A DNA stretch of 63,229 nt, filler included, from Octopus bimaculoides (GCF_001194135.2; 7 parts of 7 records of this genome joined end to end with filler, not necessarily neighbours in it), one strand, 5' to 3'; numbered from the whole stretch's first letter, positions 9,878 to 16,812 are shown. Notes: generated by a model not told the origin, from the letters alone. Translations and numbers: made by a program.

Positions 9878-10079
9878 CTTGTGGATTTAGTTTTCGAGGT
9901 GGTTCTGCAGTGAAGTCCATCTAAACACGGACATACTTGGTTCAAACTGTAATCCAATCCTCCTTTAGGGACATAACATTTCTGACCAATCTTCAGTTTC
10001 GGTTGGCAAATTCTTTCACCATGTCTTCGAGCACAACACATACTGGAATCGCAATCTTTATCTGTCTGGCACCGTGCCC
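9878..10079 (-). CDS. dkk: Dickkopf-family gene, exon encoding cysteine-rich domain 2 (colipase/prokineticin fold)
   Basis: Acceptor tctcttttacag|GG, donor ACAAG|GTAAAA, 202 nt (phase 1 to phase 2). Translates (G)ARCQTDKDCDSSMCCARRHGERICQPKLKIGQKCYVPKGGLDYSLNQVCPCLDGLHCRTTSKTKST, with the CC, G-x2-C and CPC-x2-GL-x-C motifs of Dkk CRD2. This frame has no start codon, so it is absent from the ORF track. Confidence 0.92.
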
Positions 10080-10111
10080 CTGTAAAAGAGAAAAAATTGA
10101 AACATTATTGC

Positions 10112-10500
10112 TCACGGTGCAGCGTGGCTGTGTGGTAAGAAGTTTGCTTCCCAACCACTTGGTTCCAGGTACAGTCCTACTGCGTAGCACCTTGGGCAAA
10201 TGTCTTCTATATAACCGATAAAGCCTTGTGAAAGGATTTGAACAGAAACTGAAAAAAGCCCGTCGAATATATATGTATATTTCTGTTTGTGTGTGTGTGT
10301 GTGTGTGTGTGGTTGTGTGTGTTTGTCCCTCACCACCATTTAACAACCACTGTTGGTGTGTTTACATCCCCGTAACGTAGCCGTTTGGCAAAACAGACCG
10401 ATAAAATAAGTACCAGTCTATAAGCGCATAATTACTGAGGTCGATTGATTCGACTAAAAATCCTTCAAGGCAGTGCCCCGGCATGGCCGCGAGTCAAAGA
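10112..10500 (+). mobile_element. tRNA-derived SINE with an internal (TG)n
   Basis: gtggctgtgtggtaagaagtttgcttcccaaccac...caccttgggcaa...gaaactgaaa. Related copies at 25280-25440, 25765-25930, 53822-53990 (-) and 61430-61600 (-). Confidence 0.8.
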
Positions 10501-11184
10501 TAAGAAGAAGCAAGTCAAGGATAAAAGATACATGTATGATTGTGCGCATGCGCGTGTGTGTGCACGCGCTAAAGAAATATTTGTAAAGGTTACAGTGAAC
10601 CTATTCTTTAGAATGGACTTTGCTGCTATTTGAGGGCGTCTCTAGGCCGACATATAAAACGTTAAATAGATTTTGTTGACTTTTCATGCGATAAGAATTA
10701 AAGGACTAATGAGAAATTATGCGTTGAATAATGAAGAGATGATTTGTGGGAAATTGTTAATATTATTGGTTTTACAAGACTCCCATTATGGAATATTGGC
10801 TCCAAATTTTGGCACAAGGCTAGTAATTTCGGGTGGGGTGAGGCTTAAGTCGATTACATTGACCACAGGGCTCACCTGGTACTTATTTTATCGACCTCAA
10901 AATGGTGAAAGGCCAAAACGTAAAGACAGACGCAGAAAGCGTAATACGTTCGTTGGCTGGAACTACCAACCTCTACAGAGACAACACATCCATTACGGAT
11001 GAAGTAATGGTGAGTGGAATCGCGATGAAATTGTTAAATATTATATACAGATTGCAATTAGAGAACAAGCATTAGAAGCCTGGCCCATTAAACAGAAAAA
11101 AAATCAGCATGGCCTCGGTTGAATGAAACCAAGAAAATAAAATATTTGTTAATAAATAGATAAATAAACGTATTAAGGAAATAC

Positions 11185-11356
11185 CTCGACTAGTTTCCCT
11201 GGCTCGTTTTTCACATTGTCCATACATGCAGATGTTGTGACCCTCACAATGGCTGTCCTCACGGCAAGGTTCACCCAGAGTTCGATGATAATCGCAAATA
11301 CCGTAATGAAGGTCACAGAACATATTGGAATTACAGTCGCTGCTTTTATCACATAT
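11185..11356 (-). CDS. dkk: Dickkopf-family gene, exon encoding cysteine-rich domain 1
   Basis: Acceptor tttatgtggcag|ATA, donor CGAG|GTATTT, 172 nt (phase 0 to phase 1). Translates ICDKSSDCNSNMFCDLHYGICDYHRTLGEPCREDSHCEGHNICMYGQCEKRARETSR(G). Its C-x2-D-x2-C...C-x2-G-x-C pattern follows Dkk CRD1. Confidence 0.9.
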
Positions 11357-11365
11357 CTGCCACAT

Positions 11366-11502
11366 AAACAACAACAATAATACTAATAATAACAACAACA
11401 ACAACAACAACAACAACAACAACAACAACAACAACAACAACAACAATAATAATAATAATAATAATAATAATAATAATAATAATAATAATAATAATAATAA
11501 TA
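11366..11502. repeat. (AAC)n(AAT)n microsatellite abutting the CRD1 exon acceptor
   Basis: Visible directly; ends about 10 nt from the AG at 11358-11357. Confidence 0.95.
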
Positions 11503-13170: not shown

Positions 13171-14574
13171 ATAATGCTAAAAGATGTTACAACTAAAACC
13201 ATCGAATCTTATTTTCCGACATAAGTCTATCTAGGATTCTAGATTTCAAGGTGATTTGGCTGCGATTTCTAACAGGTGGTTGAAATATCAAAGAAATTAC
13301 GGAGTTCAGCAAACGAAAGATGTTGAAAAATTGTCAGACGAATTGGCTGAAAAGAATACGATGGCGAGAGAGTGAGACCAGAACGATGTAGTGATGATGA
13401 TGCTGGGTAGGAATATGATGACTGGATAAAAGTCACAGAAAAAGAAGGTATTTGACCAGGGACAAAAATAAATCATGGTGGAAAAGTGTCACATTTGATT
13501 TAAACTAAACCGTATTTACTCGCGTATAAATCGAACTCATGTATAATTTAGCGTTAAAGTTTGGTACAAATTTTTCTCCCTCATAATTTTACAGCTTTAT
13601 CCTGTACTTTTCTCGAGTAAATCGCACTAATAACACGAGAAAAAATTGTGAAGTACCAGTCAAATGTTGGAGTTGATTTAATCGACTGTTCCCTACATCC
13701 TCACTAGAAAATAAAAATTCTGGCTTTTTGCTTCTCTAAAATTTCTGCTGATATTACAGAAAAGGCTAAAGTTCCTTCCCGAGTGATGTGCACTCATAAA
13801 GCTGGTTTCCTGGATTCTGTGACATATGTATTCTTCCCTCCCTAGATGGGACGCCACTCCATCGCAGCAATGCATCGCCCGGTAGAAGAATCGAAACTAC
13901 AATCTTACGATCATGAGTCCGACACGCTAAACCACTACGTCATGAGCCTCCGACAATACATAATTGGTATACAAAGTCAACAACAACAACACTGATAATT
14001 GTTGGTTTAGCTAAAAGGCCAGCAATTTTTGGAGGAGGAAATCAATCGCTTAATATCGATCCAGTGTTTGACAGGTACCTTTATTTTATCGACCCTGGAA
14101 TGGTGAAAGGCAAAAATTATCGTCGACGAAATTTGAATTCAGAATGTAAAAAAGTCGGAACAAATAGCTCAAGACATTTTGTCCAATCTCTAACCATTCT
14201 ACACCTCCCTACCTTGACCTCACATACTGATTAGATTACATTTATGTAATGTAAAATAAAAACAATGTTTTCTATTCGAGTTTGGCTCTGCTCTGATTTA
14301 TTTCCCTCTCTCACTGCTTTGCTTTGGATCCGTTACTTCAGCACTTTCCATCCCTTCATCTTTTCTGCCCACTCTCCTCAGGCTCCTCCTCCATACGGTC
14401 CTACCCTTTCCGTCTGGAAACCAACCAGGCATAACCAACCGAGACTATGGATATTATCCAATCATCCCGGTCTCGGTCTACTCCAAGTTCTCCTCTTGGT
14501 TCACTTGGCTTCCAGAATATATCTTGTGATTCGTTCCTGCAACATTCTAACCGCATTCCACTTTCAACCTTTTA

Positions 14575-14830
14575 TTGAAAGGTTCGATTCCCGGCGGCGC
14601 GTTGTGTTCTTGAACAAGACACTTTATGTCCCGTTGCTTCAGTCAACTCAGATAGCAAAAATGTGTCGTACCTGTATTTCAAAGGGCCAGATTTGTTACA
14701 CTCTATGAGAATTACATTAAATGAACATGTGTCTGTGGAGTACTCAGCCACTTGCATGTTAATTTCACGAGCAGGCTGTTCCGTTTATCGGATTGACTGG
14801 AACGTTCATCATCGTAACCGACGGAAGACC
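14575..14830 (+). mobile_element. SINE of a second family
   Basis: ggttcgattcccgg B-box-like head, gtgttcttgaacaagacacttta, then gtgtctgtggagtactcagccacttgc. Confidence 0.6.
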
Positions 14831-16039
14831 AGTTTATTTGTTCCCTTTATAATTTTGTTTATTTAAACATGTAACACAAACACATCTTTCTAGACTGCAT
14901 CTCTAAACTGAGCAGATTCATTAAAGTTAGCTTCTAATTACGAATCCAGTTAACCGCTTCCTGAAACAAACAGAAAACAACAGACACTCATTAGACGAGA
15001 TGTGAGTTCCTCCACTTGGTCATTTGACATGTTAGAAATAGCAGTCAAATCTTCCTCAAACTTCATTCTATCTCTTTAACAAAAGAACACATTGGCCGAT
15101 TAATAGAAGCTATTGATCACATATCAGTTCGATCAGGGTAGTTATTGATAAACAACCACCTACAGTGATGCACTCTCTGCCGACCATCCACTTTAAAATC
15201 AACATCCACCCACACGTTTAACGTTTAACATTTGTTCATACATGATTTTTTTNNNNNNNNNNCACACGTTTAACGTTTAACATTTGTTCATACATGATTT
15301 TTTAAAAAATACAGCGGAGGGGGGCGGTTAGAAAATGGTGGCCGGTAAGAAAAACAGGTAAACGAAGAACTTAAACGACCATGTTTATTCACAGCAGTTT
15401 CCAAAGGATTAACCTTAATATAATTTTAATGCTTCGCTGCTTAATATATCTCTGTTCTAACTACAGAGCACTTTATATATTGAAAACAGACACAAGACCT
15501 TTATGCTGTACAAGACTTCTCCACATTGAATCGACGGGCGTCCCGGAATTTGATTCTGACAGATATGCGATGCAGGATATCTGCAGAAAATATCAAATTG
15601 CATCAAGACATTTAGTTGTCTGCGAGTAATTCCTTGTTCGGTGAGATTACCAAGGAAAATGGAACGACAATAGGAAGATGCGCAGAAGTTGAGGCAGAAG
15701 AAAAAGAATCTGCTTTATTTTATATGTATATATATGCGCACGCGCGTGTGTGTACATGTATGTATGGATATACGTATATATCTATATTTACATATACATG
15801 TGTGTGTGTGCGTGTGTGTGTATTTATATATATATATATATATATATATATATATGTGTGTGTGTGTGTGTGTGTGTGTAATTATGTTCGCGTTTATGTA
15901 ATTATAGGTGTATGTACACATATATACGCATACACATATTTATAAATATGCACATGTATATACGTATATATATATGTACATATAAATACACACACATACG
16001 CACATACACACACATGTTCTTTTATTCTTTTTTTTTTTT

Positions 16040-16403
16040 GTATTTCAGTCATTTAACTGCGGCCATGCTGGAAAACTGCCTTTTAGTCGAAGAAATCGAC
16101 CCCAGGACTTATTCTTTGTAAGTCTATACTTATTCTATCGGTCTCTTTTGCCGAACCGCTAATTTACGGAGACGTAAACACACAGACAGTGGTTGTCAAT
16201 CGATGGTAGTGGGTGGAGGGGAACAAACACAAAACACGAAGACACACACACAAGTATATGTGTTTGTCCCTCCCCCCACTACCATCGCTTGACAACCGAT
16301 GTCTGTGTGTTTAAGTCTCCGTAAATTAGCAGTTCAGCAAAAGAGACCGATAGAGTAAGTATAGGCTGACAATTTTAATTCCTGGGGTAGATTTCTTCGA
16401 CTA
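16040..16403. repeat. Inverted pair of SINE copies (fold-back)
   Basis: Arms 16084-16231 and 16259-16403 are reverse-complementary with a spacer of about 27 nt. Confidence 0.85.
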
Positions 16404-16629
16404 TATTTATATATATATACGCATATACATATATACATATATATATATATATATATATACATACACATATACACACATATGCAAATATATATAGAGAGAG
16501 GGGGAGCTGAGAGAAGGGTGAGAAGATAGGTAATGTGCATATATATGCAAATTAAGGATATAAAGGCACAATAAAGAATTCGTTAAAATTGAATTGAAGA
16601 AGTTGAAATATAAAATTTTATGTGCTTAC

Positions 16630-16812
16630 CATTTTCTGATCGAGCATATTTCGACTCACCACAGCATGTATATTCCTGGGATGGGTGCTAAGTCTTTTAC
16701 TGATCTGACCTTGGATGGGGGAACTCTGTAATAATGTCCAGATATTGCAGAAACATAACGAAAAACTGTTTAGGAACAAAAGGACTTCAAAATATCGATT
16801 TTCACGTTTCAT
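16630..16812 (-). CDS. dkk: Dickkopf-family (Dkk3-like) secreted protein, first coding exon: signal peptide and N-terminal region (61 codons)
   Basis: ATG at 16812 in an aacaacATG context. Translates MKRENRYFEVLLFLNSFSLCFC-NIWTLLQSSPIQGQISKRLSTHPRNIHAVVSRNMLDQKM, with a hydrophobic N-terminus resembling a signal peptide. Ends at a canonical phase-0 donor ATG|GTAAGC that matches the phase-0 acceptor at 11356. A strong acceptor (tctttcatttacag|) at 16986 has no ATG between it and 16812. Confidence 0.8.

Follow-up and report, generated by a model that had tools for sequence, protein, structure and literature searches.

The Octopus bimaculoides sequence analysed here (seven parts of assembly GCF_001194135.2 joined end to end with filler, 63,229 nucleotides (nt) in all and referred to below as the window) carries on its minus strand an intact, already annotated Dickkopf gene of four coding exons, which very probably belongs to the dkk5 subfamily and is not an orthologue of vertebrate Dkk3. 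The encoded protein of 204 amino acids (aa) comprises a predicted signal peptide, a short conserved N-terminal segment, a first cysteine-rich domain (CRD1) with 8 cysteines, a 12-aa linker with GAR at its end, and a second cysteine-rich domain (CRD2) with 10 cysteines. Gene structure, fold and subfamily assignment are documented below. An earlier reading made from the DNA alone (the sequence-only reading) had described a hidden gene of probable cephalopod origin. The 204-aa translation is identical, residue for residue (100%), to the entry P0001, 'dickkopf-related protein 3 [Octopus bimaculoides]', in NCBI, UniRef/UniProt and EukProt, which bears out the origin and means that the gene was not hidden.

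The three minus-strand exons joined in the sequence-only reading (coding exons 1 to 3 in Table 1) were reproduced with their GT-AG sites, their phases and their 185-aa spliced product. The 12-aa linker between CRD1 and CRD2 was likewise found, between C109 and C122, with the sequence EKRARETSRGAR. The gene is not complete with these exons, however. As the reading frame is still open at 9878, we searched for a further exon by scanning downstream AG sites for a phase-2 exon containing a cysteine and a stop codon. The best candidate begins at 7819, where a strong pyrimidine tract precedes the acceptor TTTTTTTTCTTCCAG, and it extends the product, previously put at 185 aa or more, to 204 aa. The full coding sequence (CDS) runs on the minus strand from 16812 to 7762 and measures 615 nt, that is 204 codons and a stop. 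All 18 domain cysteines are present, and an in-frame stop is located 24 codons upstream of the exon 1 ATG.

Independent support for this gene model comes from other cephalopod sequences. The Argonauta hians orthologue (P0002) is an 80% identical protein of equal length, encoded by exons of 183, 172, 202 and 58 nt as in octopus, with GT-AG borders at all three homologous introns; the introns themselves (4,170, 6,189 and 708 nt) differ in length from those of octopus. Between the two genes the nonsynonymous rate dN is 0.115 and the synonymous rate dS is saturated at about 2.4 (Nei-Gojobori). With dN far below dS, the gene is under strong purifying selection. In addition, there is a contig of 1,116 nt from run SRR8281668, apparently from another cephalopod, whose protein product (P0003) is 63% identical and whose sequence aligns unbroken to nt 22-521 of the octopus spliced CDS, across junctions 1-2 and 2-3. 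When aligned to the octopus genomic locus, the same contig separates into three blocks coinciding with exons 1, 2 and 3, while junction 3-4 lies outside its coverage.

These data bear on the possibility that the exons represent a pseudogene or a mis-joined gene model instead of an expressed gene. The introns are repeat-rich and include two assembly gaps, and the contig that crosses the junctions apparently stems from a species other than O. bimaculoides. On the other side stand the intact 204-codon open reading frame (ORF) with every domain cysteine kept, the identical exon structure in Argonauta together with the low dN beside a saturated dS, the contiguity of the related SRR8281668 contig over junctions 1-2 and 2-3, and the high confidence with which the CRDs are modelled. 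We consider the chance of a pseudogene or a mis-join to be negligible.

Membership of the octopus protein in the Dickkopf family is secure. The sequence-only reading had proposed a Dickkopf with signal peptide, CRD1 and CRD2, to be checked by BLASTP and HMMER, and both searches returned their best relatives within this family. The predicted signal peptide is hydrophobic with small residues at positions -1 and -3, and its inferred cleavage after C22 falls where the homologues align. The predicted mature N-terminus displays a pattern, x-(I/L)-(W/F)-x, three hydrophobic residues and a more distal proline, that is common to Dkk5-type proteins from priapulids to birds. CRD1 begins at residue 63, in agreement with the short N-terminus without a soggy-type region noted before, and Pfam Dickkopf_N (PF04706) matches residues 63-109 with 30.2 bits (curated cut-off 25). 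Compared with the 10-Cys pattern of Dkk1 and Dkk3, the fifth and eighth cysteines are missing. CRD2, with its 10 cysteines between C122 and C202, has a colipase fold, and the protein stops two residues past the last cysteine. Here the Pfam models Prokineticin (19.3 bits, cut-off 21.6) and DIKK1-2-4_C-subdom1 (PF21481, 18.2 bits, cut-off 27) stay below their thresholds. A phmmer comparison of CRD2 with PDB sequences retrieved the Dkk1 chains 3S2K, 3S8V and 5FWW (E ~5e-8) as well as Dkk2, followed by Bv8 and MIT1. An AlphaFold2 model calculated from a 32-sequence alignment has a mean predicted local distance difference test (pLDDT) score of 81.5, with both CRDs mostly above 90. The top Foldseek matches of this model are again Dkk1 CRD2 structures, 3S8V_X with a template modelling (TM) score of 0.80 and 3S2K_C with 0.78; Dkk2, prokineticins and colipase (1IMT, 2KRA, 1ETH) match less well, and for CRD1 the N-terminal region of Dkk4 (5O57) is found weakly (E 0.54).

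We then assigned the protein to a subfamily. A HMMER scan of 1.84 billion representatives yielded 161 matches, which were parsed for cysteine pattern and linker length and named by cluster look-up. Dkk1-type proteins (e.g. Chanos, Scleropages) have a 10-Cys CRD1, a linker of 39-50 aa and the motif CCARHFW. True Dkk3 proteins (Callorhinchus, Rhincodon, teleost dkk3a/b, B. lanceolatum DKK3, Amphiura) combine a 12-aa linker with long N- and C-terminal regions, and cnidarian and sponge proteins (Clytia, Hydractinia, Sanderia, Sycon) have a 12-aa linker and mostly a 10-Cys CRD1. The octopus protein falls into an 8-Cys group, with an 8-Cys CRD1 and a 12-aa linker, that also contains Argonauta, Lingula, amphioxus, Holothuria, Penaeus, Daphnia, Darwinula, Trichuris/Trichinella, a tardigrade, mites, skate, teleosts, alligator and birds. 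In the profile search 'Dickkopf5 protein [Terebratalia transversa]' (UniProt A0AAU7EB79) and a Priapulus protein are placed in this group too, and both extra CRD1 cysteines are missing in all 44 of its members.

Sequence scores clearly separate the octopus protein from the other groups. With BLASTP, Terebratalia Dickkopf5 ranks first among the non-cephalopod proteins (174 bits, 47.6% identity), ahead of Lingula (171 bits) and Priapulus (150 bits), compared with 54-60 bits for true Dkk3 and 47-52 bits for Dkk1-type proteins. Subfamily hidden Markov models (HMMs), built for each group without cephalopods and scored on the octopus core, gave 170.6 bits for the 8-Cys group, 105 for the cnidarian 10-Cys group, 95.8 for Dkk3 and 60.6 for Dkk1; with random 7-sequence subsamples the 8-Cys score was 160-172 bits. 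All signatures of the Dkk5 subfamily, which were derived in the present analysis and not in PMC11414264, are found in octopus: the 8-Cys CRD1, the linker end GAR-C, the CRD2 motifs CCAR-x-HGE and GGL-x-YS-x-N, and the N-terminal (I/L)W motif. Neighbour-joining (NJ) trees with Kimura distances for 75 or 33 taxa place the cephalopods within the 8-Cys group, and in 86% of replicates their sister group consists entirely of 8-Cys members.

That the gene is a true orthologue of vertebrate Dkk3 is what the sequence-only reading, arguing from linker length, and the NCBI name both say. The linker indeed equals in length that of the Dkk3 representatives P0112, P0125 and P0131, and two true Dkk3 proteins, Rhincodon P0125 and B. 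lanceolatum P0154, likewise lack the two extra CRD1 cysteines. However, a 12-aa linker is also present in cnidarian and sponge Dkks and in all 8-Cys Dkks; being so widespread, it is no marker of Dkk3, and its distribution suggests that it is probably ancestral. Both the HMM scores (96 against 171 bits) and the BLASTP scores speak against Dkk3. The CRD core match begins between residues 106 and 211 in true Dkk3 proteins, compared with residue 61 in octopus, and their chain runs far past CRD2 (in P0112, of 364 aa, the match ends at ~242), whereas octopus ends 2 aa after it. Moreover, amphioxus has both DKK3 (P0154) and 8-Cys members (P0006, P0011), and cartilaginous fishes carry Dkk3 (P0112, P0125) alongside a 'dkk3-like' 8-Cys gene, which indicates that Dkk3 and the 8-Cys lineage are paralogous. 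Finally, according to Vellutini et al. 2024 (PMC11414264), dkk3 has been lost in protostomes, as has dkk1/2/4. We therefore regard Dkk3 orthology as highly improbable.

A second alternative, based on the classification by De Oliveira et al. 2019 (PMC6425005), is that this protostome gene is orthologous to Dkk1/2/4. These authors reported protostome Dickkopfs and called the 8-Cys ones, Trichinella included, dkk1/2/4 orthologues. The CCAR motif of CRD2, the Dkk1 and Dkk2 structures as top matches and the weak hit to DIKK1-2-4_C-subdom1 would agree with this view. Yet this hit is under the cut-off, and the PDB matches contain no Dkk3 structure, so that their ranking is uninformative on the subfamily. 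The octopus linker measures 12 aa, as opposed to 49 aa in P0111, 50 aa in P0122 and 39 aa in P0105, RHG stands in place of the HFW finger, and the Dkk1 HMM scores 61 against 171 bits. Hemichordate, echinoderm and amphioxus have separate dkk1/2/4 and dkk5 genes (PMC11414264), and the 2019 study itself reports that its clusters were unresolved. Dkk1/2/4 orthology is thus very unlikely in our judgement. The present data fit the view of Vellutini et al. 2024, who name a dkk5 subfamily apart from dkk1/2/4 and dkk3 (PMC11414264).

Several observations weigh against this reading of the gene as a Dkk5-type Wnt modulator, or against parts of it. The 8-Cys CRD1 is not exclusive, given the two Dkk3 proteins mentioned above, and the junction support derives from relatives, namely the Argonauta genome and the SRR8281668 contig. 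Strict monophyly of the 8-Cys group received modest NJ bootstrap values (36% for the 75-taxon tree, 56.5% for the 33-taxon tree), and for this reason the assignment was based on the gaps in HMM and BLAST scores, the signature residues and the paralogy, and not on the tree alone. The published classifications conflict, with dkk1/2/4 orthologues in PMC6425005 and dkk5 in PMC11414264. Receptor contacts of DKK1 are hardly retained. For LRP6, PMC5325476 (citing Cheng et al.) lists hydrophobic contacts of F205 and W206 and polar contacts of H204, S228, E232 and R236; none of these six is kept in the alignment of octopus CRD2 to the Dkk1 PDB sequences (H204 to R137, F205 to H138, W206 to G139, S228 to G159, E232 to S163, R236 to V167). 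For Kremen, the contacts are R191, S192 and K226 (PMC5014086), and K226 (octopus K157) is the single one of the three that is kept. Our literature search found no published biochemical assay of any Dkk5 subfamily member.

The sequence-only reading had further seen relevance for the evolution of Wnt modulators in protostomes. Protostome Dickkopfs have been known since 2019 (PMC6425005) and dkk5 was named in 2024 (PMC11414264). No paper discussing a cephalopod Dickkopf was found in the literature search, but both the gene model and the subfamily are already known, and the absence of cephalopods from the literature reflects missing commentary and does not amount to a discovery.

Comparison with known systems illustrates these relationships. 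Members of the Dkk5 subfamily (Terebratalia, Lingula, Priapulus, Trichinella, crustacean, amphioxus, echinoderm) share with octopus the 8-Cys CRD1, a linker of 12 aa whose last residues are GAR or GSR, two motifs in CRD2 (CCAR-x-HGE and VP-x-GGL-x-YS(L/I)N-x-x-CPC), a mature N-terminus of the form x(I/L)W..., the motif HP(R/K)NI and a total length of ~200-220 aa. Octopus and Argonauta have CQP after the HGE motif where most Dkk5 members have CKP, and their C-terminal tail is W-x-Y-Y-x-F-F-E-H-L-R-C as compared with W-x-F-W-...-M-R-C in other members. Vertebrate and amphioxus Dkk3 proteins resemble octopus in the two CRDs, the 12-aa linker and a CRD2 without the HFW finger, but are 260-431 aa long, with a long N-terminal part preceding CRD1 and additional sequence following CRD2. 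They mostly have a 10-Cys CRD1, the motif LCVWG-x-C and CCAF...PVC in CRD2, and their core is 28-31% identical to that of octopus. Vertebrate Dkk1/2/4 proteins have in common with octopus the signal peptide (predicted in octopus), CRD1, the colipase-fold CRD2, on which the predicted octopus domain superposes (TM 0.80), and the CCAR motif; they differ in their linker of 39-50 aa, 10-Cys CRD1 and HFW finger (RHG in octopus). The four-coding-exon layout of DKK1 resembles that of the octopus gene. Prokineticin/Bv8/MIT1 and colipase exhibit the same 10-Cys fold as CRD2, but are weaker matches than Dkk1/2 and consist of a single domain without CRD1; the AVITGA N-terminus is a further point of difference.

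The segments corresponding to NIWTLLQSSP and HPRNIH are kept across the Dkk5 subfamily, in priapulid, brachiopod, tardigrade, mites, fish and birds. Dkk5-type proteins occur in skate, teleosts (Clupea, Engraulis, Mola, Myxocyprinus), alligator and many birds (P0022, P0037, P0045, P0216-P0226), under the database names 'dickkopf-related protein 3-like' or '1-like'. These vertebrate proteins combine an 8-Cys CRD1 with a GAR-terminated linker of 12 aa, the CRD2 motif CCAR(H/Q)HGE and the N-terminal motif (H/Y)(I/L)WAW, and in the 33-taxon NJ tree skate, Clupea, alligator and bird form a clade with 92% support inside the Dkk5 group. Judging from these sequences, dkk5 seems to persist in non-mammalian vertebrates, contrary to the published loss of dkk5 in vertebrates, a statement based on human only (PMC11414264). 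The Dkk5-type protein P0007 (Branchiostoma hybrid, isoform X1, 320 aa) has an extra N-terminal Cys-rich stretch ending in ...CTCRGDDCNN, which is Ly6/uPAR three-finger-like and is explained by the fusion of two genes in the model or by the use of another first exon. In Penaeus vannamei many tandem Dkk5-type copies lie on one contig (P0158, P0162), some of them named 'amphiDkk3'. In view of this naming, the amphioxus 'Dkk3' of the functional study by Onai et al. 2012 (AmphiDkk3) may itself be Dkk5-type; the profile search contained no amphioxus entry named AmphiDkk3, full-text searching of the literature likewise yielded nothing on this point, and the functional evidence for that protein was not transferred to octopus.

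Table 1. Features of the O. bimaculoides Dickkopf gene, in the order of transcription (positions in the window; lengths of introns as assembled; LINE, long interspersed nuclear element)
Feature	Position (strand)	Length	Residues or phase	Description
Coding exon 1	16630..16812 (-)	183 nt	aa 1-61	Begins with the ATG; predicted signal peptide and N-terminal region; donor GTAAGC
Predicted signal peptide	16747..16812 (-)		aa 1-22	MKRENRYFEVLLFLNSFSLCFC; hydropathy and homologue alignment
Predicted mature N-terminus	16717..16746 (-)		aa 23-32	NIWTLLQSSP; homologue alignment
HPRNIH motif	16666..16683 (-)		aa 44-49	HP(R/K)NI in brachiopod, priapulid and amphioxus members
Intron 1	11357..16629 (-)	5,273 nt	phase 0	Holds assembly gap, LINE debris and inverted repeat
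Assembly gap, intron 1	15253..15262			1,367 nt from exon 1 donor, 3,896 nt from exon 2 acceptor
Coding exon 2	11185..11356 (-)	172 nt	aa 62-118 + 1 nt	CRD1, most of linker; acceptor ...GGCAG, donor GTATTT
CRD1	11213..11353 (-)		aa 63-109	Dickkopf_N; 8 Cys, C-x5-C-x5-C-x6-C-x9-C-x5-C-x5-C-x4-C
Intron 2		1,105 nt	phase 1
Coding exon 3	9878..10079 (-)	202 nt	G119-R121, C122-C176	Final linker residues and CRD2; acceptor ...TTACAG, donor GTAAAA
Intron 3		2,058 nt	phase 2
Second assembly gap, intron 3	7922..7931			103 nt upstream of exon 4, inside a microsatellite of (TAA)n/(GAT)n type
Coding exon 4	7762..7819 (-)	58 nt		SRKSGWHYYNFFEHLRCSK and stop; tenth CRD2 cysteine C202; missed in the sequence-only reading

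The gap in intron 1 is bordered by identical 41-mers (15211-15251 and 15263-15303), indicating that the contig ends overlap, and touches no coding sequence. The gap and one copy of the 41-mer are probably an assembly artefact. As the gap is probably spurious and located inside intron 1, frame continuity over it is irrelevant. An exon hidden there is ruled out because the Argonauta protein is equal in length and the SRR8281668 contig is contiguous from exon 1 to exon 2. The pyrimidine tracts before exons 2 and 4 (11357-11510 and 7820-7990) consist of extended trinucleotide microsatellites that read (TTG)n/(TTA)n in the coding direction, and variation in their length could affect splicing; the second assembly gap falls in one of them. 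A repeat of ~150 nt is present as an inverted pair at 16087-16400 in intron 1 (~311 nt, 82% self-complementary, ~230 nt from the exon 1 donor), with a third copy of 75% identity in intron 2 (10294-10446). It looks like a short interspersed nuclear element (SINE) or a miniature inverted-repeat transposable element (MITE); Rfam and tRNA scans of the window, this repeat included, found nothing.

Remnants of other mobile elements are found in and around the gene. Intron 1 contains, antisense to the gene, a degenerate RVT_1 fragment (18 bits) with a zf-RVT tail (22 bits) at 11826-12570 (+), and a degenerate zf-RVT tail (23 bits) is located in intron 3 at 8628-8903 (-). Downstream of the gene a fragment of a Pif1 2B domain at 2443-2634 (-), which scores 48 bits and exceeds its cut-off, probably comes from a Helitron-type element. 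The transposon-like ORFs at 2423-2635(+), 2795-2965(+), 5374-5640(+) and 12818-13009(+) have no Pfam match. Runs of N lie downstream of the gene at 664-1609 (946 nt, flanked by (TA)n) and 3284-3356 (73 nt); apparent 'inverted repeats' and ORFs spanning the former are spurious.

With regard to function, the octopus Dickkopf would be secreted and modulate Wnt/beta-catenin signalling extracellularly, most likely by antagonising it, with CRD2 as the putative receptor-binding module. We infer this Wnt-modulator role mainly because brachiopod dkk5 and sfrp1/2/5 are expressed together in the anterior ectoderm, a region with absent or limited Wnt ligands (PMC11414264). We rate the chances that the protein is a secreted Wnt antagonist as roughly even. 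The receptor may differ from that of Dkk1: since the LRP6 contacts are not conserved, Dkk1-like docking on LRP6 E3 cannot be assumed. Within the alignment of the Dkk5 subfamily (32 sequences), H138 is nearly invariant and G139 is invariant.

The contribution of this analysis is thus one of curation, in that the 'Dkk3' label of the octopus protein should read Dkk5-type. The name 'dickkopf-related protein 3' and the argument from linker length both indicate the wrong subfamily, so that function is not to be transferred from Dkk3. The proper reference for the octopus protein is the barely characterised Dkk5 group, in which the role as a Wnt antagonist comes from expression patterns only. More speculatively, and at present doubtful, the Dkk5 subfamily might represent a third, ancient lineage of Dickkopfs that binds its receptor in a distinct way, in which an invariant H-G-E replaces the F205/W206 finger and the (I/L)-W motif serves as a possible receptor-binding peptide, and which persists in skates, teleosts, crocodilians and birds. 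If this were true, vertebrate models such as chick and fish would contain a little-studied ligand of the Wnt pathway.

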